From: Eutreptiella sp. 'Long Island Sound 2002'
Taxonomy: Eukaryota; Protista; Euglenida
DNA length: 64,000 nt
Assembly: GCA_964036045.1 (NCBI GenBank)
Contig: OZ038378.1
Coordinates: 10,354,001-10,418,000, forward strand
Direction: 5' to 3'
Part shown: piece after piece, positions 1 through 47,831 of the stretch
Numbering within the stretch: the stretch's first letter is position 1
Layout of the letters: each line of letters opens with the position of its first letter
Position numbers and translations under genes: made by a program
The notes under the pieces: generated by a model
The model's input: only the letters and a program-made list of their open reading frames with translations
The model's database searches: none
What the model was told of the DNA's origin: nothing

Positions 1-1740
1 GTCCTGTCCCAACCCAACCCAACCCCCGACCTCCGTGGTGCATAGCAGACCGGGAGGGCGTGCTGTGGGTAACACGCGATCTGTCACACACCCACCCTCC
101 CCCGCTGCACAACGTTGTGTATTTGTCTGCTTACCTACACCACAGCGTTCGTCTGCTTACCTACGCCACAGCGGCCCTGACAGCCCTCCATCATCAGCTT
201 AGCCGCCACCACGGCGTAAACAATCCTTGTGCTCACGCCACTTCGGTTGCACCACCGATGCGGTGGAGGTCGGCAGCAGGTACTGTCCTGTTCATCGGCC
301 GTCAATCGTGGCAGCTTTAAGGAGGAAAAGCCTTCAGGACCCCTACAGCACTACCCCCTATGAAGCACCCATGCACAGAGCAATGCCGGACCCATGTACA
401 CAAGTGTGGCCACTCCCAAGCCCTTTGCCCACCGTTACTCACGCCACGCCCGCCCCCCCAGGACCACCGCAGGTACCAAATCCATACGATCCATTGGGGC
501 TCCCGCTCTGGGAACGGGGAGTTGTGCAGCTGTGGGGGGGAGGGGGGGGCAGGGGTAGTAGGCCCCCAAAACACTCTCCAGTGGGGCCCTTTGGCTGTGC
601 ACAATGCAGACCATTGCACACCATTTGTCAAGTGTCAAAAGACCAGGAACATTACATCACCGCACACAAATCTTGGTATTGCACGAGCTTGTCTTCAAAC
701 GGTGCCGACTTGGTGCCATGAACCATCCAAAGGGGGGTGGGTTTGCCACTTGTTAGTTGCGGTTCAACGCACTTTGGGTGTGTTTGGGAGAGGCGTGTCC
801 CTGGGTTGTGGACGGCCGATGCTTTGGCGGTGCAGTGTCTGCTGCCTGCGGAACATTAGTCTCAGTTTTCGTCTGTGCTGACTGGACCCGGGGGGGGGGG
901 GGGTCTCACGTGGGTGACCCTTCTCTAGTTTGGGGGGTCGTATAATCCAATGCACCAATGCCGAACGATCCAACAGCATTGCCCATTCAGCTGGACACAG
1001 GGCATAAGTGCTGGCATAGACGCAGGCAGGCGCAGCCGTCGCCACGCAGGCACGAGGCCCGTGGGGGTTGAACGGATGTGCCTGCCCGACCTTTATGCCT
1101 TGCCGGGCTGCGGCCTGTGGGCAGGGCATAGGGAAGGGCATAGTGGGTGCGCATGCGCACTGTGCTCGCACCACGCGCCTTCCGGAACACTCTTCTCAGG
1201 TGCGAAGGAGGTGAGATCAGCCAACACCCAATCGATGAGCAGCCGTAGGAGGGGGTTGCTCTAGCCCCGGGCACTCTTCGTTGGTGCCACAGGAAATGCC
1301 ATTCAGCCGGCAAGCACGGCTGCTGCGCACGCACTGCGGTGAGAGCCCTCGTGGGAAGAGAGCGTAGCAAAGGCTGCATGCCTGGGCCAGGGTGCAGGGG
1401 TAGGGGGCGAAGCACGCCGGAAGACCTGATTGCAAACGCAATGGCCCCCTTCATCATCGTTTTTGTCACGTTGGGGTCCTGTCATCCAAAAGAGTGACGC
1501 GGCATGAGGCAAGTGGGGGCGCCGCAGGGCACAACGGGTGAGGCACCAGCAAGAGACCGCATGCAGCCGCAGCAACATGAGGGGACAAAACCAGAGACTA
1601 CCCACACAATGCCGTGCGTGATACCTTGACCCCTCCATTTACCACCGGGTCCTGACCAGTCACCCAGTGCAAGGGCGGTCCTTAACAGAGTAAAAAAAAA
1701 AGTTCTACTGCGCCGGAACTGGAGTGAGGTCCCCTATCCC

Positions 1741-2782
1741 TAATCAAGACTCAATATTGGGACCGAGCTGGTGGGGGAGGGAACATCAGCTATGACTGGT
1801 GAGGGACATCAAGAATGTTTCAAACATTGATGGCTCTTGACAGAGTGAAATCACCTTGCAAGTGAACCCCATTGCCACGAGGCCCACTTTCAAGGCTTTT
1901 TGGACTTCTCAAGGGCCAAAATGGCCCAAAATGGGCTCAAAATGCGCTCATTGCACCCGTTTGTGCACCCCAAATGGTCTAGGATGAGGTCTGGGAAAAT
2001 GCGTTTTTGACCCATTTTGACCCATTTTTGGTCCCAAAACACCCCATTTTCAAGGCATTTTGGGATTGGCGGAGGACCCAAATGGGCCACCACAAGCTCA
2101 AAACGGTCCAAAAACACTTGTTTTAGCGTCGCACATGGTGTAGGATCATTTTTGAGAAAAGTCATTTTTTTGCCCCTACTGGACCCTGTTGACCCATTTG
2201 GGCACCCACGTGTTTGGGCTTGAGCTTGCAGCTTGCCGCAGCCTAGTGGGCCTAGGTATTGGGGTCTAGGCGTCCCTTTGGGCAATTCTGAGGGGTGGAA
2301 ACCACAAAAAGGGGGGGGTTGCGGGTGTAGTAGGTGCCCTCAGGATCGCATTTTGAGCCATGTAGCCAAAGATATGGCCTATTCTTGGTTTGTGGCTGTC
2401 GGCATTGGGAGCTTTTGGGGCGCTTTTTGGGCCTTTTCCGGGACATATCATGGAGTTAGAGGGCGGCAAAGAGCTCGTTGACACGGGGAAGTCAAGCCGC
2501 ACGTTGAGTGTACCCACCGTTTCCCTTCGTTTGGCCGTTTTGAATGCGTTCCAAGGCTTTTTTGGCCCAAAAATGGCTGTTTTTGGCCCTAAACTGCAGT
2601 TTTTGAAACTGAGGTCCGCCACTTGCGCATCCTGTTCTCGGCCGCCACCGTTGAGTTTTTTGCTCCAACTTTGTGTGATTGTATTTCACACCCATAGGTA
2701 TCATCCACCAAATTTTCAGCCGAATCTGAAGCACCACGACGGAGGTCTGATTTTTTCCCATTTCGCGCGTGCTGCTGCTTGC

Positions 2783-2813
<31 letters not shown>

Positions 2814-2955
2814 GCTGCTGCTCCTGCTGCTGCTAAACCTGGTAGGTCCACCCTAGACCCTAAAAAGGGTTATAAAACCAAGACTGTTTCCACCAACTCG
2901 GTGACCCTGGCCCTAACCGTAACCCTAACCCTACCCCTAGGGCTACCCCTAACCC
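1741..2955 (+). repeat. ~1.2-kb repeat family unit, copy 1 (contains a GCTT/GCT microsatellite and ends in a degenerate CCCTAA tract)
   Basis: Junction TAATCAAGACT..ATATTGGGACCGAGCTGGTGGGGGAGGGAACATCAG recurs at 1741 and 2956 (period 1215). The body aligns by eye with 2956-4072 and 4455-5530. Confidence 0.9.
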
Positions 2956-2957
2956 TA
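2905..2957 (+). repeat. Interstitial degenerate telomere-like tract (CCCTAA variants)
   Basis: CCCTAACCGTAACCCTAACCCTACCCCTAGGGCTACCCCTAACCCTAATC. Shorter versions occur at 5464-5476 and, inverted, at about 6881-6890 and 8354-8365 (TTAGGGTTAGGG). Confidence 0.75.
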
Positions 2958-3979
2958 ATCAAGACTGAATATTGGGACCGAGCTGGTGGGGGAGGGAACA
3001 TCAGCTATGACTGATGAGGGACATCAAGAATGCTTCACACATTGATGGCTCCTGACAAAGTGAAATCAGCTTGCAAGTGAACCCCATCACCACAAGGCCC
3101 ACTTTCAAGGCTTTTTGGACTTTTGAGGGGCCAAAATGGCCCAAAATGGGCTCAAAATGGGCTCATTTCACCCGTTTGTGCACCCGGAATGGTCTAGGAT
3201 GAGGTTTGGAAAAATGTGTTTTTGTGGTCCCAAAACAGCCCATTTTCAAGGCATTTTGGGATTTTCGGAGGACCAAAATGGGCCACCACAAGCTCAAAAC
3301 GGTCCAAAAACACTTGGTTTAGCGTCGCACATGGTCTAGGATCATTTTTTGGGAAAAGTCATCTTTTTGCCTCTAGTGGACCCTGTTGACCCATTTGGGC
3401 ACCCACCTGGTTGGGCTTGAGCTTGCAGCTTGCCGCAGCCTAGTGGGCCTAGGTATTGGGGTCTAGGCGTCTGTTTGGGCAAATTCGAGGGGTGGAAACC
3501 ACAAAAAGTGGGGGGTTGCGGGTGGACTAGGTGCCCTCGGAATCACATTTTGAGCCATGTAGCCAAAGATATGGCCTATTCTTGGTTTGTGGCTGTCGGC
3601 ATTTGGAGCTTTTGGGGGCCTTTTTGGGCCGTTTCCGGGACATATCATGGAGTTAGAGGGCCGCAAAGGGCTCGTTGGCACGGGAAAGTCAAGCCGCACG
3701 TGGAGTGTACCCGACCTTTCCCTTTGTTTGGCCGTTTTGAATGTGTTCCGGGGCTTTTTTGGCCGAAAAATGGCTGTTTTGGCCCTAAACTGCAGTTTTT
3801 GAAACTGAGGTCCGCCACTTGCGAATCCCGTTCCCGGCCGCCACCGTTGAGTTTCTTGCTCAAACTTTGTGTGATTGTACTTCACACCCATAGGTATCAT
3901 GCACCAAAATTTCACCCGAATCTGAAGCACCACGACGGAGTTCTGATTTTTTCCCATTTCGCGCGTGCTGCTTGCTTGC

Positions 3980-4014
<35 letters not shown>

Positions 4015-4072
4015 GTTAAACCTGGTAGGTCCACCCTAGACCCTAAAGAGTGTTATAAAACCAAGACTGGTG
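2956..4072 (+). repeat. ~1.2-kb repeat family unit, copy 2 (3'-truncated)
   Basis: Same ordered blocks as copy 1 up to AAACCTGGTAGGTCCACCCTAGACCCTAAA..TTATAAAACCAAGACTGG, followed by an unrelated segment at 4076-4453. Confidence 0.9.
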
Positions 4073-4454
4073 CCATTCCGCCATATCCCATTAATTTGTG
4101 CCACGTGAGTTGGAAAAAAATTCGCGTGAATTTTTTTTCCTGCCCCCCACGTCGCCCTTAGCTTACTGCATACGTTGTGTTGTTTTGGACCACGTTCATC
4201 CTAACCTTGAAGCGAGCAACCTAACCCCGTACTCCACTCGGAATGAATGTGCTCCCCAAGCTTCGTGTTGACGTCTGCGCTCGGCTTTCGCTTCACCGCG
4301 ATCCCGTTCCTCTTTGTCTTGTTATGAGCAAATCGATGCATATGTACAATGCATTGTACTTCCTGCCACATACCTGTACCAAAAAATTGATGTCTCTATC
4401 CAGCTATTGTGTGCCTGTCAAGTGTTGCATGTTCCTTGTTTCACGCATTACGGG

Positions 4455-5530
4455 GTGCCACGAGGCCCACGTTCAAGGCTTTTTGGACTTCTGAGGGGCC
4501 AAAATGCCCCCAAAATGGGCTCAAAATGGGCCTATTTCACCCGTTTGTGCACCCCAAATGGTCTAGGATGAGGTCTGGGAAAATGCGTTTTTGACCCATT
4601 TTTGACCCATTTTTGGTCCCAAAACAGCCCAGTTTCAAGGCATTTTGGGATTGGCGGAGGACCCAAATGGGCCACCACAAGCTCAAAACGGTCCAAAAAC
4701 ACTTGTTTTAGCGTCGCACATGGTATAGGATCATTTTTGAGAAAAGTCATCTTTTTGCCCCTACTGGACCCTGTTGACCCATTTGGGCACCCACCTGTTT
4801 GGGCTTCAGCTTGCACCTTGCCGCAGCCTAGTGGGCCTAGGTATTGGGGTCTAGGCGTCTGTTTGGGCAAATTCGAGGGGTGGAAACCACAAAAAGTGGG
4901 GGGTTGCGGGTGGAATAGGTGCCCTCGGAATCACATTTTGAGCCATGTAGCCAAAGATATGGCCTATTCTTGGTTTGTGGCTGTCGGCATTTGGAGCTTT
5001 TGGGGGCCTTTTTGGGCCGTTTCCGGGACATATCATGGAGTTAGAGGGCCGCAAAGAGCTCGTTGACACGGGGAAGTCAAGCCGCACATGGAGTGTAGCC
5101 ACCGTTTCCCTTTGTTTGGCCGTTTTGAATGGGTTCTAGGGCTTTTTTGGCCGAAAAATGGCTGTTTTGGCCCTAAACTGCAGTTTTTGAAACTGAGGTC
5201 CGCCACTTGCGAATCCCGTTCCCGGCCACCACTGTCAAGTTTCTTGCTCAAACTTTGTGTGATTGTACTTCACGCCCATAGGTATCATCCACCAAAATTT
5301 CACTCAAATCCAAAGCACCACGACGGAGTTCTGATTTTGGCCCATTTCGCGCGTGCTGCTTGCTGCTTGCTTGCTGCTTGCTGCTTGCTTGCTAAACCTG
5401 GTAGGTCCACCCTAGACACTAAAAAGGGTTATAAAACCAAGACTGGTTCCACCAGCTCGGTGACCCTAACCCTAATCAAGACTGAATACAGGGACCAAGA
5501 TGGTGGGGGAGGGAACATCACAAAAACTAG
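4455..5530 (+). repeat. ~1.2-kb repeat family unit, copy 3 (5'-truncated)
   Basis: Starts at GTGCCACGAGGCCCAC..TTCAAGGCTTTTTGGACTT and ends with the CCCTAACCCTAATCAAGACTGAAT junction at about 5464-5486. Confidence 0.9.
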
Positions 5531-7089: not shown

Positions 7090-8400
7090 TCTCTGTGCTT
7101 GCTGTCCGAGTGTTCAATGGCTGGGGTTGAGGGCCAAGCGGGGGGGGGGGGGCTTGTCTCTCGAGCGAGCAAAGCGAGCGAGGAAGGGTTGGGGTTGGGG
7201 GGGGTGATAGGGGAGGGTTGCAGGGAAAGTGCTGGGTTGGGCATGTCTCTCGTGCGACCAAAGCGATCCAGGAGGGGTTTCGGGGGGGGGGGGGGTAGGG
7301 GTGGCTATGTCCTAAATGTGGCCACAATTGTTCTTTGTCTCCCTCAACATGCCTTGTTATTCAGCCCCTTGTACTGGTGTACCTCATGTTCCCTCCCCCA
7401 TCAATTTGGTGCCAATATTCAATCTTGAATGCAGTTTGGGTCGGGGTCACTGAGCTAGTGGAACTAGTAAGGTTTTACAACCCTCTGTGCAAAGATCCCT
7501 TGGTGCCTACGGTTCGGCCGAAATTTTGGTGGATGATATCTGTGAGTGTGAAGCACCACTAAACAAAATTTGATCAAAAAAACTTTAACGGTGGCGGCTG
7601 AGAACAGGCGTTGCAAGTGGTGGACCTAGGTTTCCAATTTTGTCAAAAATGGCCAAAAAATGCCCTTTTTTGGCTAGTTTGGGTGCCTAGCATGTCCTTG
7701 AAGGGGAACCAGCCTAGATGATGAGCAAACACCTTTCACTATTGTCTAGTGGATTTTGCACCCAAGGAGTGGGCTCGGCGTCCGCTTTTTGGGCCCAGTT
7801 GCTACAAAATGGGCATGGAAAAGCACCCTTTGTGCATACTTTTTCGAGTTCCGTCTTCCTACACTGTATTTGACTACCATGGATTGTGTTGGGCCTCCTT
7901 GTGGTGACAAAAAATGATGAAGGGGATCATTTGCGAGCTATTTCCACACTGGCACCCTCTTTGATTTGATGCCTTGTTGGCACCACAGTGTGGGGCAGCA
8001 CGCATGGCGCACGTGCGAGGGTAGGGTTACAGGGTTCATCCTTGGGTCCAAATATGGTCAAAAATTATTTTTGACACAGTTGTTCCCAGACCACTTGGGG
8101 TGTTACAACAAGTGGTGTAAGGCTGTTTTAAGCCATCTTTGACCCATATCAGCCCATCCTAGTTCCCAAAAAGCCGTGAAATGCGCAATATTAGGACCAA
8201 ACGTGCATGACAATGCCCCCGTCCTTGCGGGGCTAGAGTGCAATCCAAATCTGAATGGCATGTTCTTGTATTGGCCTTCCTTCATTGGTGTGCTTACATG
8301 CCGCACCCCTTTCCCAACTTCCCCACCAACTTGGTCCTAATATTCAGTCTTGATTAGGGTTAGGGCTAATACTAGGCTTGGGGTCGGAGTTAGGGTCAAA
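7090..8400 (-). repeat. Reverse-orientation, more diverged fragments of the same 1.2-kb/foldback family
   Basis: Reverse-complement matches to the junction (AATATTCAATCTTGA near 7417, TATTCAGTCTTGATTAGGGTTAGGG at 8341-8365) and a copy of the foldback loop and right arm (GAAAAGCACCCTTTGTGCATA near 7819). Confidence 0.75.
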
Positions 8401-9362
8401 ATTGGGGGTAAGATTAGTGTTGGAGTGCAAAATAGACAAAAATCTCCTTCGCGCGCCTTTGATGCCCGTGTACCGTGAGGCGCCTTCAGCGCCCATAGAC
8501 TCCATAGCCGAGTACCATTAGCAACTAACTGTTGGCCAAAGACGCCCTGGGGGGGGGGGGTGTCCTAGGACTGATGGAGCCAGCCCCCCCGGTGCTTGTA
8601 CCCTTGTGCACTCAATGGGATCTCCAACTTAGTGCTGCCGGGCCACATGCTGGCCTCACAAAGCCATGGGTTAAATCCCCACAATAACAGTTGGGTGCTG
8701 TGGTACTGCATGGGCCCTGGAGCCACCCACAGCCGGGGTGCTCGCCGGTTCACCATCACTCGAACTGCACGCAGTAATGCCAGAGAGCTCCTGCACATGG
8801 GCAGCTGCGTAGTCTCCGAGTGCAAAGTGGTGCTCACAATGGCGCTGGTACTTGGTGATGTTGGTGGTGGCTGGGCTCCTGTCCGCTGATCTTTCTACGA
8901 TGCAGCAACCGCCACACCCAGCAACATTAGGGCACGGCACAGCTGTGCCACCATTGAGCAAAAGGTACCTGCCCATGTGTGCCCTATGTTTCCCTTGGCT
9001 GCAACTCCCTCGATGGCGGCCCCTTTCCACTGCAATCTGCCACAGAAATGCCACCAGTGCATGCCCACTGCTGCTGCCTCCTCCCACCCTTGCCATCATG
9101 TGGTCGAGCGAACACCCCTTGCGGGGGGAGGGGCTTGGGGGGGTGCAGCTGCATGGACACCACTGACTATGGCTCCTATGGCGGTGAGGGGGTGATTATG
9201 CATGCTGCCATACAACGCCATCGGGTCCGAGGATTGCGATACAAGACCATCTCATCTCAAAAATAAAATAAACGAAATAACATGTGGTGTTGCACTTCAC
9301 CGAAAAAAAAAAAACGATGCATGGGACGCCCGGCCACCAGCAGCGGCGGGCTAGCCAGCCAT

Positions 9363-11336
9363 TCACCGACAGTGTTCGGCGATTACCATCTAGAACAGCT
9401 GACTTCGGGCCCAGAGGGCCATCCTTCAGGACCGTCCGTAACCGAAAAACAACCGGTCCCTCTGCTCCGCCCTAATCTGCAGCACCTGCCATGTAAAAAT
9501 ATCCACCACGCCCGACACCATCAGGGACGTCTCATACAGGAACCAGGTGGCCTCTCCCAGATATTGCCTGCCGTAGATGGCCCCCGCCTCTTCATCGGAC
9601 TCCGAATCGCTCTCATCTTGGAACCACACTGAGGCAGAGCCCTTGATCTGCCGCCCCACCTCCAGCACCAAGTTCCCCTGCAAGACGGACGGGCGCACTG
9701 CAGCAGCAGGCAGTGGGCTGGGCGGGGGCCACGCAGATCCGTCGACGTGTCCCACGGCAGGCGGCCCTAGGCCGTCGGATGCGAGGGGAACTTCCACCGG
9801 ATGCCGCCGCATGCGGCTACAGGGGAGGGGGAGGGGGGGGGGGGGCCTTGTACAGGGATTGTTTCACCGGGCCACACCCGTGGGGGAGACACGACTCTCC
9901 AGGGACATAGGAGGAGCTTCTGGGATGTGCGTGATGCAGCGGGCCCCCCTGGGGCTGGTTGCCCTGCTTCCCAAAGCCTGGGAGAGCGCCATGAAACAAA
10001 CACATGAGCCACACCATCCGCATTCGGCAGCCCCTGCCAAAGGTTGTACAGAGGGGGAGGGGGTAATTTCGTGGGAAAATCTCCTCCTTAAGGAAGGTGG
10101 CGAAGTTTTCCCCGGGCGAAATTTAGGGTGTCGGCAGGGCAGTGAAGATGCCATGAGACCGGTGCAGTGCCGAATGCGCTGACTTTGTTCCTGTGTCCAG
10201 TGATGCACAGGGGGCGGAAGAAGGGCGGCGTACCTGGTGGTGCTTCTGCTCCGCCCAGTCTTTCTGCATCTGATGGAACATCTCTTTCTTCTTTTGAAAC
10301 TTTTCTCTGCGTTTCTGAAGCACAGGCAATGCCACATTTTGACCCGCGAACCAACACTCCGTCCCTGACAGCACAGCTTCGCTCCATCCGCATCATCAAA
10401 CGGCAACACAACCGGTGCACGACGACTTGTGGATCAGCGATCAGCGGGGTTCCGTCAAGGGCGCCTGGGCGGCAGGGCTGTCCTCAGTGCAACACAAGGC
10501 ACTCCCGGACTCCGGTACGCCGGGACATCAACAGATACCGACCGATCCGCAACCGCTGTCGGTTACGGGCCATCCCTTCTGCAGAGAGGCACCAGGACTT
10601 CAAAGGACTATGGCCTTCTCATGAGCCGTGTCTTGGGGGAACACAGCCCTCTGGTGCAAGGCACTCTCTCCTTTGCCAGCACTTCGTGAGGAGCTGGGGC
10701 TATTCCCTGCGGGCCGCCATCGCAGATTGGCGCTGGGGCATCTGTGGTCCGCCGGCCGCCGGCTTCTGCCCAGGGGTCGGGCGCAGGTCATGCGCAGGTA
10801 CCATCCGTGAAAACATGGGCAGTTACGCTGGCTCCCGTGGGCACTGGGCACACGCGTTCCGCTCCTGTGAGCAACGCGCATGTTCCTGTGCAAGTACCAG
10901 TGCTCTGCCTGCCTCTACCGGCGGTTTGAGCGCCAGCGGGTCGTGAGTCTCGCTTCCATGCCCCGAAAGACCGGCCACCCGGTGTCGGTGGATCATGGGC
11001 GACCTTTGACCGTTCGATCACGCGACATCCTGCCCCCTGGAACCGGAGGACGTCTTGGAAGAAGAAACCCCCTCTTTCCCCCGGGACGGTCCCACGGACC
11101 AGACCTCACGTGCGCTATCGCATGACAGACACCTGCCTCTTCTCTTCACGGCGCGCACGACGCTCCTCCCGCGCCTGGGCACGCTGCTCTTCCTGCTTCT
11201 GGAGGGCCATGTTCTTGGCGTCTTTGAGCCGCTGGTCCACCTCCTGAGCGGCCCCCTTGGCCATGCGCATGTGCTCCGACGTCTCTACTTCTGCGCCACT
11301 GTTCTCGTAGATAAGCTCCGCCTGTTCCTTCAGTTG
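9363..11336 (-). CDS. 3' part of an intron-containing hypothetical coiled-coil protein gene. Exons 11336-11133, 10314-10234, 9677-9486 and (tentative terminal) 9389-9363.
   Basis: Each internal exon is bounded by a (pyrimidine-rich)..CAG acceptor and a CAG|GT donor, and has length 204, 81 or 192 nt (all phase 0). They join to QLKEQAELIYENSG...EERRARREEKRQ|KRREKFQKKKEMFHQMQKDWAEQKHHQ|GNLVLEVGRQ...VVDIFTWQ|MVIAEHCR*. The 5' exons are not resolved. Confidence 0.65.
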
Positions 11337-13364
11337 CTGGGGAAAACAACAACAGCGGGGGTAGAGGTGGAGTGCTCGGGCCATCCTCAGTCTCCCCCGA
11401 CACACTTGACACCTGTTGACACCACAAAGGACGATGGCGACCTTTGTTGGCCCCTGGCCTGCTGATGCCCCCCCACCCCCCCTCCCGCTCCCCTGGCCCC
11501 CCGCTGCCATGAGTGGCTGCAATTGGATGTAGGGGGTGCCTTGGTGTCGGTGCGGCAACGTCTGTATCATTATTCGCACGCCCGCCCCCCCCTCACCTCC
11601 TGCAAGCATGGCCCTTCCAGCCCGCACGGGGGGGGGGGGGGGGCTGGACATAGCCTGCCGCTTCGTGCTCCGGCTGGAATAGACCGGAGACCGGGGTTCA
11701 GCAGCCATTGTGTGGACGAGCGCGAGAAGGCGGCAACGGCCAGAGGTACGGCTGAAGGCAAGGCCCCACTCCCAAGAGACATAAATGACCTCAATCGACC
11801 GGAGCAAGTCACACAGAAGACATGCCACTGGACACCGGGTGCAAACATGTGCTGGGCTACGACTTTGTGATCCCCCAACCCCCCCAGCCCCCCGACCCAA
11901 GGGGTCACCGCAGCCTCACCGCCGCCACAGACCGCAGGACTGCCGCATGCGGCGGCTTAGCATCGCCAGCCACAAACCGCGACCTGGTGCCTCTCGTCAC
12001 TTCATGTCCCCCCGCCACCAGCTGCCCCAACCGATGTGCCGACAGTCTGTCTGTCGGCGCGCAGTCATCACGATATAATTGGCATTTTTCTGTTTGAGTC
12101 TTCACGCCGTTGTCGGGCTTTGCTTTGTACGGCTGACAGAACTCGACGATGGCACCGCTTCCCCAGATGACTTTGTGGACTATTCCCTGGGGCCGGCGCC
12201 GCTACGGGACTAGATACCACGGAGGCGGTCTGCGGCAGTGGTGATCAGTGGGATGGGCACCGCGCTCTGATCCACACCACTGCACTTCTACTGCTGGGAA
12301 GGCTGGCACACGTCCCACTGGCAGACGAACAGTGTCGACCGGACCTGCGGGGACTGACCTGGTGGCACGGGGCGGTCCGACAAGAGCCTCGGGAACCGCA
12401 GGCACGAACCTGCAGCGCATTGCTCTCTGCGTCTAGCACCCCCCAAAGGACCGTTACGTGAGGTGGCGGAGGCCCGCGCGACCCACACCCAGCACCCGGT
12501 ATGCCCCGGGGAGGGCGGGTGACGGGGGATTCTCCTTGCGCCACAGCCGCCGTTGGAGAAGGCGGGGCAATCTCGTATTCTGACAAATTGCCGGACCCTT
12601 AAAATGTGTTGAAAAAAGACGAGGCGCCCCCCTTGAGGACACACTATCAGCGCAGCACGTGGCACGCCGTGCAGCTTGGGACTGGGTTCGTGTCACGTCC
12701 CTGATCCAAAGCTGCGGCCCGCCCTGAAGATCTGTGGCACATGAGGTGGGCAGGCACGCACCTTTCTGTGCCACCATGTCACAGCGAAAACACCCACGAA
12801 CAAGACTGCGAACATCTGGTAAAGAAGTCCACTGCAAAGAAACAATGCACAAGAGGTCCAGGGACACACACATTGCATTGAGCGGAGTGGATGCCGCGAC
12901 TGGACGAAGACGGAGGGAGGGAGGGAGGTTTGCCGTGCGCGCCTGAGGGACTGAGCAAAAGCCTTGCCGCCGCATTCGGAGGATGGGCCACGATGCGCGG
13001 CTTCCGTACCTCCCACTGGTCACGCTGGAGAGCCATAGCGTGCGCGGGATCACTATTGTGCTCCCAACTGTGCTCCGCGCAGGAAGCGCGGAGGGCAGAC
13101 ACCCGATCCATTGATTGCACCAAACAAGGCTGGTTGACCGGTCCCGTTCCATCTGGCGGCGTCCGCCGCTTGCCCGCACACACCCATGGCGCTCGGTGGT
13201 GGGCTTGTGGGTTTGTCCAAGCATAAGGACCTCTTCCGACTGGGCTTTTTGAGGGTCAGAAGGCCGTAATAATCTGGACTACAGACGAAAATGTCATGTC
13301 ACAGTCAAATCCTGGGACCAGGGGCGGCGCTCTCTCCCTGACAACAAGGTGAATGGTACCGGTA

Positions 13365-13619
13365 CCCGGGGGGGGGGGGGGATATTCCGTGCGGGGGAAA
13401 ATATGAATCTACAAATTCTGGCGCGACAAAATCTGTGCCTCTTCTTAAAAATGAGCGAACAAATTATGTATGGTTCTCAATAATTGCTCATGAGAAACAG
13501 TGGGCGCTTGCTGGTATTACCTGCACAAATCCTTAAAAACACCAAAGAAATTGCGTACAAAATTTTTGTACAGAATTTGGAAAGCAGAAATTCTAGCTTG
13601 TATGACCCCCCCCCCCCGG
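13365..13619. mobile_element. TA-flanked MITE with (C)CCGGGGG...CCCCCGG termini and an AT-rich interior
   Basis: TA at 13363-64 and 13620-21. The G-run/C-run inverted ends resemble the TA|CCGGAGGG ends of the 28561-29092 MITE. Confidence 0.55.
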
Positions 13620-13662
13620 TAGGATGTTGTGGATACTTCCCAGTGCACACAATGGTTTTTCC

Positions 13663-13977
13663 CAGGGCAGTCCTTAGGGAAGAAAAAAAAAGGTGTTCCT
13701 GCACCCAGGTTTCCCAAAAATGCCCCCGGGCACACCATATCTTGGCGGTGGGCGGTTGGCGGTTGGCGACTGGCGGTTGGTGGCGGTTGGTGGCAATTGG
13801 TGGTTGGAGATTGGTGGTTGATGGCGGTTGGCAGTGGTTGGCGGTTGGCGGTTGGTCGCCGCTGGCAGTTGGCGGTTGGTGGCGGTTGGCGGTTGGTGGC
13901 GGTTGGTGGTTGGCCGTTGATGGTCCCTTGGGGCGGTCCTTAACAAAAAAAAATCTCGGTCCCAAAGGACCGCCCTG
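13663..13977. mobile_element. Non-autonomous hAT-type MITE (315 bp) carrying a (GGCGGTT/GGTGGTT)n array
   Basis: 18-bp TIRs CAGGGCAGTCCTTAGGGA / CAGGGCGGTCCTTTGGGA (16/18). 8-bp flanking direct repeat GTTTTTCC (13655-62) / GTCTTTCC (13978-85), 7/8. Short TIR plus 8-bp TSD is typical of hAT. Confidence 0.85.
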
Positions 13978-16112
13978 GTCTTTCCTGAAAACCCCCATGA
14001 ATGAGTTTGGGTGCATTGTACCAATTTTCTGACGTATGCATTTCAATCCGTCTATTTTTGACCCAATGAGATCTGATGAGTCGGCAGCCATTGTGTGGAC
14101 CCCTTAATATGTTGCAGGCCCCCGGTAGGGGCTGGAAAAGGACTCCCAGCCACAACTTATTTTGCCGCCTCCCAGCCCCTGTCGCACACCCACCCACACA
14201 CCCACAAACTCCACACACACACACACCAGCAGGTGAGGGTGTCCTGCCAAATGCAGCAGGAATTGCCTACCTCTCCCTGCGCTCGCAAGGAATCGCAAGG
14301 ATACGTGATCCATTAATGTGCTAGCGGACTTCCTCTTCCACAGTACTCCCACAACGAGAGGGAGAATATAAGTCAACCCATTACCATGCGGGGAGGGGGC
14401 GTGCACCCATGGCATGGAGAAGTCCCTACAGGGCCAAAAGCTGCCTCAGTCTTGGGGCCACGGTCGAGCAGGGCCATCCACTGTTTCACTTGGGCCTGGG
14501 GGGGGCGGGGGTTCCCATCTGATGCTAACCTCCCCCCGCCCCCATATAAACCGTTTTCAGATGGGGCCGGTTCGGTATCACTGGGAGACTTCCCAAATAA
14601 GTAATCGCTCCATGAAAATGGTGGAGAATAATGGCTGTGTGGGTAATGCACCATGCAACACGTATCAGCACATTTGAGCACTCCGCAAATGGTCATGGAT
14701 CATGGGGACATTTTCTGGATTGGTTGTTACCTTACGCACCGCCTGGTGTGCATTACGTGCCACAGCATCTCGAAGGGACTGATTAGTGTCCCTCTAATGT
14801 CCCTAGAGACGGTCCTACAGCAGTAGCAGGCATGAAATAGCATTAGCTGTGCCCTGCACATTACCGTGATATTAGGTTGCATGGTGTAATATGGGGTGGC
14901 AGTAGCAAAAAGCTTGTACCTGGTTTTAGCAAAAGTGTGCATCACTAGAAATCCCACCTGCTGCACGATGCATTAGGAGACAGGCTTGCAATAGGCCCCC
15001 GTGGCAAAAGCATGCTTCAACAGGTTGCGGCAGCCATCTCAGTCTGCTACAAACAACAAGCCTCACTAGGGTATCGTGCAGTTCTTCCCATCCCATGCCA
15101 CACTGCCCCCTCCTGAGTGGACATTTCAAAGCTTCAACCTCTTCCCATCTCACGCCAATACCCCCCCCAATGAGAGTCCCCCCCCAAAAAAAACGAAAGA
15201 TTGTTAGAATGGAGCCCCCCAACCCCCCAGCCAAAGCAAAATGGCAGATGCCCCACAAGCAGACGGGCTGCAGCTTTCTTCCGACGAGCCAGGCAAGAAA
15301 TAGGACCTAGAGGCTTGTTTTCCCTGCACAGCACCTCCATCGCCGTGTTCTACAACGCCATCGGCCCTGACACAGAGGTCTGGTAGGCCATACATGGTCA
15401 AGAGATGAGGAAGACCATGGCAGCAAGCAGTGCAGGTAGCCCTGTGCCCCGCTTGTGGTGGCATTAGAGAGCCAAGCAGCACCAGCCAAAGCTTACCAAT
15501 AAGGCTTATTTGGTATGCGCAGCGTATTGGACATGCAAACAGGCAAACACAACAAAGGACCCATTTAGAAAGGTATTTGGAACCGAACACCAACCAAATA
15601 CACTGGTAATGCAAAGGAAAGCACAAAAAGACTCAAAAAACTCAGTGTGATTAATTCTCGGTTGCGTCAAAAAAAAGAGGGGGGGGGTCAGAAACCGTGT
15701 GGGACGTTTTCCCCATCAGACGCCCCCCTCTCTGCCCTCCTCCTTTCGGGCATGGTATCATACTTCCAGCAGACGGTCATTAAAATCAAAAATATTGGAA
15801 ACGACCACAGTGGGCGCTTCCACGACGTTATGTCCTGGAACCACTGGTAGAGGCACAAGAGGGGCACAGTAGTGAAGTTCATCAGCTGCATGCCCGAGCC
15901 TTGCACCACAGAGGTACTGAATTTGGGCCGCTGTTTAGAGGACTGTTCATGGAAGGCATCGGCAACTTGCTTCTGTGCTTGGGCATCAAAACACCGCTGC
16001 AATACAAGACGTACACGGAGGAGTTGCACTGAACGTAACGCACCATGAACGAAGATGCGGTTGACCTTCGGGACGTGGGGAGGAGCATGGGAAGGCTGGA
16101 GAGAGCCTATTC

Positions 16113-17640
16113 TTAGGGCCCTGCCCCCTTACCCGTACGCCTAACGGCGACTTGGTAGCAGCATGCACCGCTTCCTTGCAACGGCCGGAGGTCTTGGCTG
16201 CTTTTGCAGCTGAGATGGCCCCCTTCCTTGCCACCATGGCCCCGGCCCCAGCGCACGTGGGGGCAACACGCGGTCGCTCCCGGGGGCGGAAAGGGGGCGG
16301 CTTGCCTGCCCCCCCCCCCCCCCACAGCCAAGGACTCCATGCTCACGTCACTCCAGCAACAGATTGCTTTAGCCACTAGAGGACATCATCAACACGCTTC
16401 GCAAAGAGCTAGCCAAGGCACGGGGGGACCCGGCCCCGGCGCCGGTGCGGGTTGCTGCCTGCCACCCAGCCCCAGCGGCCTCGGTGGCCCCGGCCGCCCA
16501 GACCTCGGGCTCGGGCACGGGCTACCGCCACCTCGAACACCACAAGGGATGCCTGTGCTAGTCGTTGTCTTGCCGACCCACCCCTTCGCCGCGTCAACCC
16601 CACGTGGGCTGCCGAGGACATCAAGTCGGCCCAGGGGAATATCACCCTCTACGGCATGGGACACTTCGGCAAGAGTGCTGCTGAATTTGCTGCGGCCAAC
16701 TTTGCTGCGGAGGCGGCGGAGTGGGCTGCCGGCCGCACCGGGGCTCTCGCGCGCTCACCCACGGAGTGGTGGGTGGCGGGCCCCCGCAAGACCGCAGCCA
16801 AGCCAGCATAGCCCCACCTAGCAAGCATAGCAGACCGCCTATGCTGCTGCAGCGGTGTCCCACTTGCCCTCTAATTCCCGTTGCGGCTGGGTGCAAGTGG
16901 TCGCCGCCCCTAGGCGCAAAGTGGCGCTACTGCAGTCGGTGCAGCCCTCTATAGTGGCCTTGCACCTGCTCCTCCCGTCGATGACTACATTCCAGCCCCA
17001 GCGGCGATACGAGGGTGCCGCACGGGACTTGCTTCGCGAGCGGGGCCCCCGTACAAATCATGCAGCGGCGGCACCGGTGGCATTGGGCCCTCTACCCGAG
17101 GCCTGGTCCGCCCTGATGGCGAACAACGATCTCAAGCCGCTGTTTGCGGGGCTGGTGGAGGGCGACTCCCCGGGGCACATTGGCAACCGTCTGTAGAGCA
17201 CCAAGCCGAGTGACCCGGACGCGGTGGCCTGTGCGGCGCAACTCCTCAGTGCCCCTACCTCCATCCGCCTGCGGGGGTACCCCCGCCCTTTGTGTTGGCC
17301 ACTGACGGGTACGCCTAGCTGTGGCGGGCGGCGCAGGAGGTCTTCGGGGACGCGGCCCCAATTTGGGTCCGCCGCTGCACCAAGCTGTCATTCACCTCCT
17401 TGGCCCGCCCAGTGTTCAACTTGGAGCTGGAGGGCATCGCGCTGGGCTAGACCGGGGCCACGTTGCTAGCCAAGGATACGCGCTTACTGGACAGGGTCTG
17501 GGAGCTCGGCCACGGCCGAGGCGGTGGGGAAAGCTACCGCCCTTTGGGGCCGCGCGACCACCTCCTACACCACCGGCCGCCAACGGACGAGGCAAAGGAG
17601 CAGGCCACGAAGCGTTTTTGGTGGCCTGTAGTCTTGCCCA
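16113..17640 (+). pseudogene. GC-rich, frameshifted coding-like remnant of unknown family
   Basis: Protein-like stretches in shifting frames (RRVNPTWAAEDIKSAQGNITLYGMGHFGKSAAEF; LPEAWSALMANNDLKPLFAGLVEGD; LLAKDTRLLDRVWELGHG). No motif recognised. Confidence 0.3.
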
Positions 17641-29622: not shown

Positions 29623-32015
29623 TACAGCCAGAGAGATGGACGGAGGGATGGACGGATGGACGCACTGACAGACATGCAGGACTGAGCATTGAGACTGCAC
29701 TGGTTGGCAAAAGGTTTGCACACTATACACTCTGCACTCTGCACTCTATGCACACCCTGTACACTGTACACCCTACACACACCACAGTGTGTAGCAGAGA
29801 GACAGGCAGACATGCGTTCATGCAAGCTATGGCTACAACACTGTGTGCAGGCACATGCACAACTGGTGCAACTATGCATGCATTAGATTGCAGGGCAGGG
29901 CAACCTGGCTCCCAAACATCAAGTGTCAATGGTGTGGGCCAAATGGGATTGAGTTCCCGCTTGAGCACAGGTGTGAATACTTCGTCGCATCCTCTACTGC
30001 TGTGTATTGCGACACAGAGGTAAGGATCTGTCAGAAATGTTACAAAGTGCAAGGGACTAACCCAAGTTGAGCAACAGGGGGTAAAGAGAAAAGGCACAGC
30101 ACCAACTACCACAGGCCTAAGAAGTCAAAGCCAACCCACTGGGGGACGATGGCTGCCCCTGCTCCTGCTCCTGCTCATCCCTTGCACAGAGTGATCCCCT
30201 GTAGCGGCTTCGGCATAACAGTGCGCCAGAATATTTGCTCGTGCATCTGCGGCTTCATGTTCATCCAGCACAAGCCAAGTGCAGGCACGTGCAGATGTGT
30301 GGGCAGCTGCAGGTGTCTAGGGGCAGATATTTGTGCAGATGCCTGCACCTGGGCAGTGGCAGATGTGTGTGAAGATGCAGGACACATTCAGATTCAATGG
30401 CACATGACACACACACAGGGTCACATGTACGCGCTGATATGGAGGTGCAGATGCAGGTGTGGATGAAGGGGTATTAAGCAGGGGCAATTTACATGCAAGG
30501 ACAGCGCAAGGGTAGGGGTGCGGACTGAGCAAGCCACCAGAAATGGATATATGCACAGGCGGATATGCAGATGCGGAAGCGGATGCAGTGGCAGATGCAG
30601 GTACTGATGAACATTTGGGTGCAGGTTCCTGGGCATATAAGTGCAGATGCAGGCGTGTTCCACTGCATATATCTCTGCAAATGCTTTTTCCACCGGACCT
30701 ACTCATACTTCTGCCACTGCATCTGCCCGTACAGCTGTACCTGCCTGCACCCACAGGTACCTGTGCATCTACCCCTGCAGCTGCCGCTGCGTCTGAAGGG
30801 ACATCTGCACAAGCATCTGCACATGCATGCCCTTGCATTGCGCCTTTCCCTGTCTGCCACTGCATCCAGACTTGCATACACACACAAGCAAGACTGTGCA
30901 TAATATCTGGGTCATGTGTCTAACATGTTTGGTGGATGACATGTGGGCACCATATTTGCAATTAATATGGGGTTGGCCTAGTCACTACACACTTGTATTG
31001 CAATCAACGGGACACAGCCACCTGTTTTGCCCAGGTGACCAGCCAGAGCTTGTATCAACTATGCAGTAAGTGCTACCTCAGCGCTTCACGCCCATTTGGG
31101 TGATGGATTCCTACTGAGCGTCCACAGCTTTATGTGCACCATGGTGTATATGCGCTCACAAAAGCGTGGCAGATATCTACTCTTGGAATCTTGTGTACTT
31201 CCACCTCCACATTCAGGGCCCCTGATTACCTGCTGAGGGTGGCACCTCAGTTTTCCGCTCTAAATCCCGCTCCGAAAGGTAAAATGGGGGGAGTGGGGGA
31301 AACTGGGGGAAACTGGGGGGAAATGGCGGGGAATGGGTAAAGCAGGGGAGACCAGGGGAGAATGGAGGGAAATTGGTGGAGGAACGTGGAAAAAATATAC
31401 AGTTGTCCACCTAGGTGGCAAAAATCTTGCAAACACAGACACCAACCTTAGTCCTGGGTTCATATCCCAGATGGTCTTGATGGGGACATAACGCACACCC
31501 TTAAAGGGGTGCACTTGGTCAGCCATAGACAGAACAAGGGCAAGAGGGCCCAAAGATGCCGGAAGGAAGTGGGAATCCTTCCTGCGCACCGAAGGGAAAG
31601 GTTAATTACCTTTAGTGTGCATTGTCCAAGAAATTTACAATGGAACAAAAAAGTTCCATCTCTATAGAGTGAGAGACTGTGTTACCCAACTTTGTGGCCA
31701 AGGCCACGGGGGTCCTTAACGCAAAAAAAAAAAATGTTCCAGGACCTGGTATTTTCAAAAGAGCCCGCGGACAGTACATGCCTTCACCCCGGTGTTCCCA
31801 ATTGTTCAACCCTGAGTCCCTAGCCCAAATTTGTATAAGCACACAACCATATGATCCTAGCCCCACATGTGTTGCATGATAGCATCCGAACCCTACCTCA
31901 CACCCTGCACAATTCAACATGAACAAGAGCAATGCTTTTTTCAATCAAATCCAGTGACGCAGCGTTCGACCACCCAAATGTTCCATCGCCGGTGGCACAG
32001 CTGATAACAAACCTC

Positions 32016-32981
32016 CTACAGCTGGTACAACCTCTGGAAGTGCACCCTGACACGCTCCATAAGCTCACCCTTCCCCCCGCTGACACTCAAACCATGCTTC
32101 CTAGAAATGGCTTTGAACTCAACTTTAGTCCACTCATGCAACTTCCCCCTCTCCATTGCCTTCAACACCGCCTCGTCCACATCATACGCAAACACCAACT
32201 GCGCGGCAGGGTTAGAAGAGGTAGAGGGGACAGCTGATGGGTTACGAAGGTCAGAAGAGGAGCTACTGGCAACTTCACCTGGCTGCTCCAAATCCTCGTC
32301 CTCACTGTCTTCGTCCTCACCCTCCAACCCAACCCCATACACATCGCCAATGTCGGCGTGAAGTGTTGCCCTCTTGGGGACAACCCACAAATCTTGAATG
32401 TCCAACTGAACCTCTGCCTGACCATCCTCTTCCAAAGAAATTGGCAAATCCTTGAAAGCAGCAAACCCAAGCAAACCACCATCTTCCACCTCAACCGCAT
32501 GCCCTTGCTTCCGTTTGCGCGGGCGGAAAGGGGTCTTGCGCAGATCATCAAAAACCTCAAAGGGCCCCCAATCCTCTGGTGCCTCCCCATTGCACCTTAC
32601 CCACAGCGTCTCACACATGCGATCCGTGCTTTGGCCAAAGTCCGTAGCCGTCACGTAGCTAAACACTCTCTCACACGAACACGAGCTTGCCTCAACCCAA
32701 TCCTCCAGTGTAGCACTACCATCCCACGCAGTTCCCTTGAATCGTGTTTGCACGTATTCAATCAAACTGCGAAGAAACTTCATCCGGCTACCCTTGATGA
32801 GGCTACTCCCTTCGTCAACACCCAACAGTTCCTCCCACACCCCTGGAATGACATGACGCATGGTGTGCAACAGCTATGTGCACATCACGTTCATCAAACC
32901 CTGGACGGCGGCGACCCGTGCCCCCTTGGTCACTTGAACTTTCTTGCTTGTGGCACAAACCACAACAAAAACATCGCATAA
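32016..32981 (-). pseudogene. C-terminal fragment of a hAT transposase with a C-terminal SAP domain (5'-truncated, one in-frame TAG at 32874-76)
   Basis: ASSCSCERVFS (32690-32658) matches the hAT C-terminal SSxxxERxFS motif. After an acidic linker (EGEDEDSEDEDLE), LHEWTKVEFKAISRKHGLSVSGGKGELMERV fits the SAP pattern. Motifs recognised by eye. Confidence 0.75.
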
Positions 32982-32982
32982 A

Positions 32983-33735
32983 GGTGGCTACGTAACCCCT
33001 GCCGTCTCGGGGATCCCGACCGCTTCAGAGCGGGGGGCAGAATCAGAAGTGGCCCACTTGTGGGCAAGGTGGCTACGTAACCCCTGCCGCCTCGGGGATC
33101 CCCTCCGCTTCAGAGCGGGGGGCGGAATCAGAAGTGGCCCACTTGTGGGCAAGGTGGCTACGTAACCCCTGCCGCCTCGGGGATCCCGACCGCTTCAGAG
33201 CGGGGGGCAGAATCAGAAGTGGCCCACTTGTGGGCAAGGTGGCTACGTAACCCCTGCCGCCTCGGGGATCCCCACCGCTTCAGGGCGGGGGGGCAGAATC
33301 AGAAGTGGCCCACTTGTGGGCAAGGTGGCTACGTAACCCCTGCCGCCTCAGGGATCCCCACCGCTTCAGAGCGGGGGGACAAAATCAGAAGTGGCCCACT
33401 TGTGGGCAAGGTGGCTACGTAACCCCTGCCGCCTCAGGGACCCCCTCCGCTTCAGAGCGGGGGACAAAATCAGAAGTGGCCCACTTGTGGGCAAGGTGGC
33501 TACGTAACCCCTGCCGCCTCGGGGATCCCCTCCGCTTCAGGGTGGGGGACAAAATCAGAAGTGGCCCACTTGTGGGCAAGGTGGCTACGTAACCCCTGCC
33601 GCCTCAGGGATCCCCACTGCTTCAGAGCGGGGGGAAGAATCAGAAGTGGCCCACTTGTGGGCAAGGTGGCTACGTAACCCCTGCCGCCTCGGGGATCCCC
33701 ACCGCTTCAGAGCGGGGGGCAGAATCAGAAGTGGT
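32983..33735 (+). repeat. 85-bp tandem repeat, 9 copies plus a degenerate tenth
   Basis: GGTGGCTACGTAACCCCTGCCG starts at 32983, 33068, 33153, 33238, 33324, 33410, 33495, 33580 and 33665. Confidence 0.97.
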
Positions 33736-33901
33736 GCCCAAAAGAGGGCGGAATTGCTACGTAACTCCTGCTTTCTCGGCGATCCCCAAAAAGGGCGGAA
33801 AGACATGGCCCACGTTGGGCCGGGGCAAAAAGGCCTCTAGGGGCGGTCCTTAAGGGGGGGTCCTTAACAAAAAAAAATCTTGTCCCTTAAGGACCCCCCT
33901 G

Positions 33902-34136
33902 GCCAAGGCTGACCAATGGGGTGTGTTTGGCGGCACGTCTCCCAATGGGTGATGAAGTGGTCCACAACTTTCTTCCATCCCACTGTACCATCCTCGCTGC
34001 GCGCATTGTCATTGACCCACGCTATAGCTTCCAGTACTTGGTCTAGACCAGGGGTGAAAGAGATGTTGCGTGCCGCGGTGCTTTCCTGGATTTGCTTTTG
34101 GCACCACGCGGGCTCGTCTGAGGAGGAGTCACTCAT
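33902..34136 (-). pseudogene. 5' part of the outer element's ORF (possible Myb/SANT-like domain), interrupted by the nested hAT and continuing at 31696-31260
   Basis: ATG at 34136 preceded by a pyrimidine-rich AG (34152-53). Removing the nested element plus one TSD gives ...HPIGQPWPQSWVTQSLTL*RWNFF..., in frame with the 31589-31260 ORF. Three in-frame TAG/TAA stops. Confidence 0.5.
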
Positions 34137-47100: not shown

Positions 47101-47831
47101 GGTTCGTCTTGCGTTCTCCTTGAGCGATGAGCAATTGTACTTCGATTACCTTGGCCTAATCAATTCGCCTGCCAAACTTCCAATTGGAACGAAGCTGAAC
47201 AATCACCATCCCGGTGGCTTGCAAAAGCTAGATGTGGTACTACAAACAGAACCGCCAATCCCACCCCGCTACATTCTTTGAACGCTCCCTTTGAAACAAT
47301 CAGTACAACCAAACATGGCGAATAGGTTTGCCCTGAAATTCTTTGTTGCCGATGCGTCACCACAATGAAAAAAGATGGTGTTCAAACATGCTCGGACATT
47401 GACCGAACGTTCGAAACATGTAGTCTCAAGTGCCATCCATGTCTTTTGCAGGACCTCCACACTTCCTCAATGCATCGACCCCGGTGTCGTAATCGATGCT
47501 ACTTTGCCATTGCTTTAGTTTCGGTGGAAGTCCATTGCACAATAGGTTGCCTTTGTTGAGGACATCCTTTCCTCCATTGCATTGCGAATACTATCCTTTC
47601 CTCCGCCAAATATAGTTTCTTCTTGATTGCAAGATTGATTTTGATTTGACCGCGTCGGCTACGTAGTACGTTCGCATTTTAAACCTCCGGATGAGTGAAT
47701 GTGGAAGTACAAATTAAGAGCAACGGCGTTTATTTCAAATAGGGTTTGCGGTTCGTCAAAGGCCCGCGACGTCATGGGAAACATGTTTGTTACATCTTGT
47801 AGAATTTTTCACGACCGCAATTGCAGTGGCC

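Follow-up and report, generated by a model that had tools for sequence, protein, structure and literature searches.

Introduction

Nonconventional introns make up 72% of the introns of Euglena agilis (Nomura et al. 2025, PMC12501133), and such euglenid introns had been described earlier (PMC3935182, PMC4770533). Knock-ins into EgGSL2 in Euglena gracilis defined the code 5'-N3CDG-/-CH'GN5-6|R, in which exactly 3 nt form the 5' spacer and 5 nt the 3' spacer, a length of 6 nt being tolerated there at lower efficiency (PMC12501133). Splicing depends on the CAG/CTG bases and needs about 12 bp of pairing beside these motifs, and a purine is preferred at the acceptor exon; a T at this place was tolerated for one intron and not for another in the published assay (PMC12501133). 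Fully synthetic 50-bp introns that follow the code were spliced precisely (PMC12501133). Here we describe a DNA element whose ends satisfy this code, located at positions 13663-13977 of a stretch of 64,000 nucleotides from Eutreptiella sp. 'Long Island Sound 2002' (assembly GCA_964036045.1, contig OZ038378.1, 10,354,001 to 10,418,000, forward strand; hereafter the window). The element is a MITE, or miniature inverted-repeat transposable element, of 315 bp. It is very probably an internal-deletion derivative of a family with CAGGG ends and 8-bp target-site duplications (TSDs), most likely hAT, and a copy that is not itself an intron and yet satisfies the splicing code on the minus strand.

The origin of the nonconventional introns of Euglena has been open since the 1990s. 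An origin from MITEs was put forward in 2014 (PMC3935182) and taken up again in 2016, 2018, 2024 and 2025 (including PMC11282704 and PMC12501133), and TSD-like junction repeats appear in the 2024 review; no element family or superfamily was named. An earlier note on this DNA, made from the sequence alone, regarded the element as a candidate generator of such introns. The geometry on which that idea was built proved exact, but the MITE origin as such had already been published. Neither the name hAT nor a link between the 3-nt and 5-nt spacers and an 8-bp TSD was found in the full-text literature searched, a corpus that leaves subscription journals mostly outside and gives no proof of novelty. 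The present MITE family is a concrete and abundant candidate, with ends and an 8-bp scar that reproduce the splicing code.

Anatomy of the MITE and its fit to the splicing code

Direct reading and a repeat search delimit the MITE by two 18-bp terminal inverted repeats (TIRs), CAGGGCAGTCCTTAGGGA at 13663-13680 (plus strand) and, as its reverse complement, CAGGGCGGTCCTTTGGGA at 13960-13977 (minus strand). The two agree at 16 of 18 positions, and the element begins with CAG and ends with CTG. Directly outside lie the two copies of the TSD, GTTTTTCC at 13655-13662 and GTCTTTCC at 13978-13985, which match at 7/8 positions. When the flanks were aligned at lengths of 4-12 nt, a near-full match was obtained at k=8 alone (4/7 at k=7, 5/9 at k=9). 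The repeat search returned a 19-nt arm pair at 89% in place of the 18-nt TIR, because the last base of the TSD pairs with the first by chance. When the window was shuffled 20 times, no CAG...CTG pair combined TIR agreement of at least 11/14 with a TSD of at least 7/8, and a random pair of positions in this DNA gives at least 7/8 with a probability of 1.7e-3. The earlier note had given the element this length, these ends and this TSD, and all of them were confirmed by the direct reading, by the match at k=8 alone and by the shuffles.

A degenerate microsatellite of TTGGCGG-type units (13742-13919, found by TRF) occupies the interior in place of a coding region. The MITE has no credible coding capacity, its long open reading frames (ORFs) being read-through of the microsatellite, and the interior is unstructured in RNA folds. 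The TIR core recurs as a subterminal direct copy, GGGCGGTCCTT, at 13931-13941 (plus strand); this copy is complementary at 11/11 positions to the right TIR, which it faces over a poly-A tract.

Read on the minus strand, the locus has the form GGAAA|GAC-CAG...CTG-GGAAA|AAC, that is, N3-CAG, CTG-N5 and the purine A at the acceptor. The terminal stem formed by TIR pairing is present in both the minimum-free-energy and the centroid RNA folds. The purine rule is satisfied on the minus strand only. Judged by its sequence, the minus strand of the MITE together with its TSD complies with every rule of the code in PMC12501133. If this strand were transcribed, a span of 323 nt (13658-13980, minus strand; GAC-CAG...CTG-GGAAA, next base A) is predicted to be removable. 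Each of the two TSD copies would be cut behind its fifth base, and the product would hold one TSD. Since 3+5 equals the length of the TSD, the cut would leave the exact pre-insertion sequence, as it would for any CAG...CTG element with an 8-bp TSD. On these points the earlier note was right: its minus-strand reading and its 323-nt cut from 13980 to 13658 are arithmetically correct, and its argument that a 3+5 cut takes away the element plus one TSD and puts purines on the exon sides is exact and agrees with the published code. It had further proposed that the TSD explains the asymmetry of the intron motifs at +4 and -8. This holds in part. Any split that sums to 8 restores the target, and therefore the TSD accounts for the sum of 8 but not for the 3/5 split itself. 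On the stem, offsets of 3 and 5 nt would produce a 3' overhang of 2 nt, the geometry of RNase III products. For related introns, a pathway with RNase III and a ligase has been suggested (PMC12621601).

The MITE at 13663-13977 is an ordinary copy of a probable hAT family and not an intron. Neither a credible ORF nor a Pfam-supported exon lies on either side of it, and no recognisable gene is interrupted by it; the earlier note had likewise placed it outside any such gene. ORFs of up to 337 aa run across the restored, element-free junction, and these were rejected as GC-rich noise with no domain support.

Abundance in the sequenced DNA

Four sequencing runs that cover the stretch behave as genomic DNA, with flat word depths of about 6, 16, 35 and 2 and contigs of up to 155 kb. 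Among the RNA runs searched, none contains 11000-17000. Both junctions of the MITE are bridged by unique-depth DNA contigs, and therefore the insertion is real in the sequenced sample. No empty-site allele was seen among the contig joints listed for the MITE locus in these genomic DNA runs. In run X1, the word depth is about 6 in the unique flanks, thousands over 13401-13800 and about 63,000 over 13801-14000. The summed contig word depth over 13601-14000 in the same run is about 6,000-63,000, which is a qualitative measure and not a copy number. The word depth of MITE DNA lies about 1,000-10,000-fold above the single-copy level. The MITE is very high-copy, and so is a separate repeat that flanks it on the left.

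This separate repeat, at 13363-13622, adjoins the MITE on the left and has a G-run, ccggggggggggggg, and a C-run, cccccccccccgg, as its borders. The DNA word depth reaches 800-5,000 here, compared with about 6 in unique DNA, and the repeat is possibly a further MITE whose ends are G/C runs. Two GC-rich short segments, 11628-11647 and 16306-16323, stand 4.66 kb apart on the two sides of the MITE and have a word depth of about 600. Many contigs link them to each other and to unrelated DNA. Because so many unrelated joins occur, the two segments are copies of a dispersed short repeat and do not mark a deletion allele.

Relatives of the MITE and the length of the target-site duplication

The terminus of the family occurs 5 times in the window, against 0.63 expected. 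One relative in the window is a larger, internally deleted member of 2,197 bp at 31705-33901, with the ends CACGGGGGTCCTT... and ...AAGGACCCCCCTG, as read from the sequence and the flank alignment. Its TSD, GCCAAGGC, is identical at 8/8 positions on the left (31697-31704) and on the right (33902-33909), and its left terminus is CAC, not CAG. A tandem array of an 85-bp unit (8.8 copies, 94%) fills 32981-33734 of this element. Besides, a solitary degenerate family terminus (AAGGGCGGTCCTTAAC...poly-A) is located at 1671-1765 (plus strand); its partner end was not found within the window.

Seven further loci (about 146 kb), fetched from one ENA assembly of the same genome by way of the ORF of the 31705-33901 copy and hence not an unbiased sample, added four elements with perfect TSDs. 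Two of these, in L001 (7577-11716, TSD ACTAGTGC) and L007 (8836-11759, TSD TGCGTGTG), have the same TIR as the window copies. The element in L002 (8235-11665, TSD GCCACACC) belongs to a sister subfamily with the TIR CAGGGGTTGCCAT. The fourth is a MITE of 211 bp in L007 (379-589, TSD CCCCTCCC), which comes from a different CAGGG family (CAGGGACGCATTGG...CCTTCTAATGCATTCCTG) and shows that several CAGGG-ended MITE families coexist. No intact TIR pair was found in L003 and L004.

The earlier note had proposed tabulating TSD lengths over the CAGGG-ended copies. All six elements gave 8 bp, five of them with 8/8 and one with 7/8 matching positions, and other lengths failed; random position pairs drawn from the same DNA reach 8/8 with a probability of 6e-4. 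Three of the six can also be read as having a 6-bp TSD, since the last base of their TSD pairs with the first. The other three are unambiguous, two of them with the TIR of the window copies, and therefore the length of 8 bp stands. Two unbiased censuses of TIRs and TSDs were swamped by tandem arrays and long palindromes, and the CAGGG elements alone were left after filtering. A long inverted duplication of about 4 kb in L005 (11821-15938), with the palindromic junction words CACATGTG, CAAATTTG and GAAATTTC, mimics TIRs and TSDs in automated scans. In ORF-bearing elements, arrays of the 85-bp repeat lie between the ORF and the ORF-distal end, and they were also found in L001 (about 7680-9940) and L002 (about 8300-9580). 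Read on the opposite strand, these arrays give long but spurious ORFs, such as a call of 747 aa in L001.

The two ends of the MITE correspond to the two ends of the larger elements. Its right end agrees with their ORF-distal ends at 70-86% over about 58 nt, compared with about 40% for the other end, and its left end agrees at about 61% with their ORF-proximal ends over a length of 90 nt, compared with about 44% for the other end. The MITE and the larger elements have in common a tract of poly-A/T and a subterminal TIR-core copy, in the same layout at the ORF-distal ends. From these alignments, the MITE is an internal-deletion derivative of the ORF-bearing family that kept about 60-90 nt of each subterminal region. 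Small, non-coding, bounded by TIRs and a TSD and descended from a larger element that has these ends, it has the features of a MITE.

The transposase-like protein of the family

The larger element at 31705-33901 carries an ORF of 284 aa (32016-32870, minus strand), which encodes the C-terminal part of a transposase-like protein with a ...SCERVFS... block; an acidic linker and then a SAP domain (Pfam SAP_new25, E=1.5e-6) come after it. This ORF has 167 relatives, all of them fragments, and more than 150 ORF copies are present in the same assembly. Protein sequence searches returned same-assembly copies and one MMETSP transcript only, and no outside hAT protein. The transcript, P0153, is marked complete, has 374 aa and encodes the C-terminal part of the protein; the ORF family is thus expressed somewhere. 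The acidic linker and SAP tail are also found in the relatives P0151, P0250, P0303 and P0306 (SAP_new25, E down to 5e-8). Such a SAP tail is unusual for a hAT-like transposase.

Three queries of the ESM Atlas with different family members gave, as look-alikes at 0.90-0.92 (the strength of a lead), clusters of Dimer_Tnp_hAT, DUF4371, FAM200/GTF2IRD2, ZBED5-like and ZMYM1-like proteins, and in the last query the ten best family-bearing matches were all hAT-type. A hAT transposase is expected to have an RNase-H-like DDE core and a C-terminal hAT dimerisation domain. In the longest copies, P0250 and P0322, the D...D...E-type blocks ...VLDAG..., ...VVSDGAG..., ...DAAHC..., ...TGARW... and ...SCERVFS... 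were recognised by eye, in the order of Buster/DUF4371-type hAT transposases. The hAT consensus includes short TIRs of about 10-25 bp starting with 5'-YARNG. The family fits it, with an 18-nt TIR and CAGGG at all intact ends. Together, the TSD length, the YARNG termini, the language-model look-alikes and the motifs seen by eye make membership in hAT probable. The earlier note had looked to the copy at 31705-33901 for the link to a hAT transposase. This copy does provide a perfect TSD, GCCAAGGC, and ends shared with the MITE, but profile searches gave no hit to hAT.

Published intron junctions

Intron 4 of gapC is a nonconventional intron that occurs in E. agilis strain ACOI 323 only and was recently gained (Milanowski et al. 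2016, PMC4770533). Its junctions are given in Table S3 as GTCCC|aaccattaccttg...caaggtatggtccc|AACCTC, and its 'eight nucleotide direct repeats' were attributed by the authors to break repair (PMC4770533). We found that the 8-nt repeat GTCCCAAC is cut after base 5 on both sides (5|3), that TIRs of about 9 bp lie inside it and that an A opens the acceptor exon. The register is GTCCC|aac-cattaccttg...caaggtatg-gtccc|AAC. As far as can be judged from the published junctions, this layout is the one that the arithmetic of a hAT element with an 8-bp TSD predicts. Like the MITE, gapC intron 4 is a TIR element within an 8-nt direct repeat, with splice sites that take in 3 nt, the element and 5 nt. Unlike the MITE, it has the termini CAT...ATG, is 160-162 nt long, is unrelated in sequence, comes from another species and has a repeat that was ascribed to break repair.

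Older introns were counted by hand in the same 5|3 register from Tables S1-S3 of PMC4770533, in which the strains are not independent; conventional introns give about 3/8 from their AG|GT consensus. The junction repeat matched at 2-6 of 8 positions in hsp90 intron 5, up to 6 in hsp90 intron 8, 3-5 in gapC intron 2 and 2-5 in tubB intron 15. Introns 3 and 6 of hsp90 were at chance level (about 2/8). The counts are suggestive of decayed 8-nt repeats kept in the 5|3 register by older introns, and do not go further than that. The expectation of the earlier note that published introns show an 8-nt repeat split 3+5 is thus borne out by gapC intron 4 (PMC4770533) but not by hsp90 introns 3 and 6. In addition, 69% of the nonconventional introns of E. 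agilis are reported to be 'slidable' through junction repeats. In Table S2 of PMC4770533, hsp90 introns 8 and 9 of strains WI, PO and WA have identical 5' 20-mers and the same upstream exon pentamer. This identity reflects either one element family at two positions of the gene or a copying error in the table.

Surrounding genes and RNAs

Only two ORFs of the window have Pfam support: a CCCH zinc-finger protein at 47787-48728 (plus strand) and an integrase core (rve, below the Pfam cut-off) at 55128-56354 (minus strand). Rfam gave no match in the window. The spliced leader of E. gracilis is absent from the window and the seven loci. L004 contains a BTB-Kelch ORF, for which cluster look-up gave no transcript-derived partner. 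The ENA assembly comes with ORF calls that contain no introns.

Origin of the element and of nonconventional introns

We favour the following course of events. Cut-and-paste transposition with an 8-bp staggered target cut would have placed the MITE in repeat-rich, apparently non-genic DNA. The enzyme would have acted in trans and come from the transposase-like protein of the family, of which 31705-33901 holds a truncated, SAP-tailed copy. Family members that land in exons would be spliced out at the 3-nt and 5-nt offsets. Several results weigh against this explanation. Read on the plus strand, the locus would have T as the first base of the acceptor exon, and the summed contig depth supports the high copy number qualitatively only. 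Many hATs tend towards the target nTnnnnAn, which is not a strict criterion; this preference was not seen in the TSDs GTTTTTCC, GCCAAGGC, ACTAGTGC, GCCACACC, TGCGTGTG and CCCCTCCC, with T2 in one and A7 in none. A Pfam search of twenty-eight family ORFs and fragments gave SAP only and no hAT domain, PDB sequence and family-profile searches gave the SAP region of Ku70 and a chance match only, and an AlphaFold model from a 16-sequence family alignment had a predicted local distance difference test score (pLDDT) of 41, too poor for a fold search. Among the family copies, neither a zinc-finger N-terminus nor a clearly autonomous copy was found. This lack of profile or structure matches to hAT domains is what would be expected if the family belonged to another superfamily with 8-bp duplications, namely P element, Merlin or Zisupton. 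We consider such an assignment improbable, because the family termini match YARNG, the Atlas look-alikes were hAT-type only in three of three queries, and the block order LDAG / SDGAG / AAHC / RW / SCERVFS is that of Buster/DUF4371-type hAT transposases.

A further step is the proposal that hAT-type CAG...CTG MITEs generate the nonconventional introns of euglenids and that the fixed 3/5 spacers exist to erase one 8-bp TSD. We regard the case for and against it as evenly balanced. It would bring together the published spacers of 3 and 5 nt with CAG/CTG, an abundant MITE family of exactly such geometry, the repeat split 5|3 in gapC intron 4, which is the only documented strain-specific newly gained nonconventional intron, the decayed repeats in older introns (hsp90 5 and 8, gapC 2) and the 69% of 'slidable' introns in E. 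agilis. Against it, none of the six CAGGG-ended elements in the window and the seven loci (about 210 kb) interrupts a credible ORF, the gapC element has CAT...ATG and not CAG...CTG, hsp90 introns 3 and 6 are at chance while conventional introns reach about 3/8 in the same register, and the 3/5 split is left unexplained by the TSD. The resemblance could also be a coincidence of generic hAT traits and an independently arisen splicing code, the MITEs being genomic parasites that are never removed by splicing in their own right. YARNG termini are common in hATs and 8-bp TSDs occur in many organisms without such introns, and the MITE and the five other elements are all non-genic. Nevertheless, four independent features would have to coincide, which are the terminal trinucleotide, the spacer sum equal to the TSD, the terminal pairing and a gapC intron with TIRs and an 8-nt repeat, and we find coincidence rather unlikely. 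It is much less probable still that double-strand-break repair produced the 8-nt repeats at the junctions of new nonconventional introns, so that the resemblance to MITEs would be irrelevant to intron origin. This is the interpretation of the authors of PMC4770533, who cite a high break-rejoining activity in euglenids; however, TIRs directly inside the repeat, as in the gapC intron, are the signature of a TIR transposon, and in the same type of genome TIR elements whose TSDs are exactly 8 bp abound.

With these alternatives in mind, we return to CAG...CTG hAT MITEs as the source of the introns. They may be removed from mRNA without a scar in the orientation or orientations that offer a purine, and the 2-nt 3' overhang would point to an endonuclease-plus-ligase pathway; to this combined proposal we give slightly less than even credence. 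The possible role of the MITE family as an introner is sharply testable. Under the relation 3+5=8, the 8-nt repeat published for a newly gained intron would be read anew as the scar of a transposon. If the link is true, host RNA processing in Euglena would be tuned to the integration chemistry of one transposon superfamily.

Comparison with known systems

The closest described elements are the hAT MITEs, such as Mar in Drosophila (PMC3517528) and the Ds-type deletion derivatives of Ac. The present MITE shares with them an 8-bp TSD, short imperfect TIRs of the CAGGG (YARNG) type, subterminal repeats of the TIR core, an origin through internal deletion of an ORF-bearing element, and a high number of copies. 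It differs from them in that the family protein is too divergent for Pfam and has a C-terminal SAP domain, no clearly autonomous copy was recovered and nTnnnnAn was not seen. Compared with euglenid nonconventional introns, the minus strand of the MITE has the same N3-CAG, the stem next to CAG/CTG, CTG-N5 and the purine, and its length is in the natural range. Those introns are defined by transcripts, whereas the MITE lies outside a recognisable gene and is known here as a many-copy DNA element. The introners of Micromonas, Aureococcus and dinoflagellates (PMC11282704) are non-autonomous DNA transposons as well, and their ends together with the TSD suffice for exact removal from RNA. Because removal is exact, introner insertions in exons are tolerated. 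Introners are removed by the spliceosome, with GT/AG partly made by the TSD, whereas removal of the present family is predicted to proceed by the probably non-spliceosomal pathway of Euglena, which would measure 3 and 5 nt from the stem.

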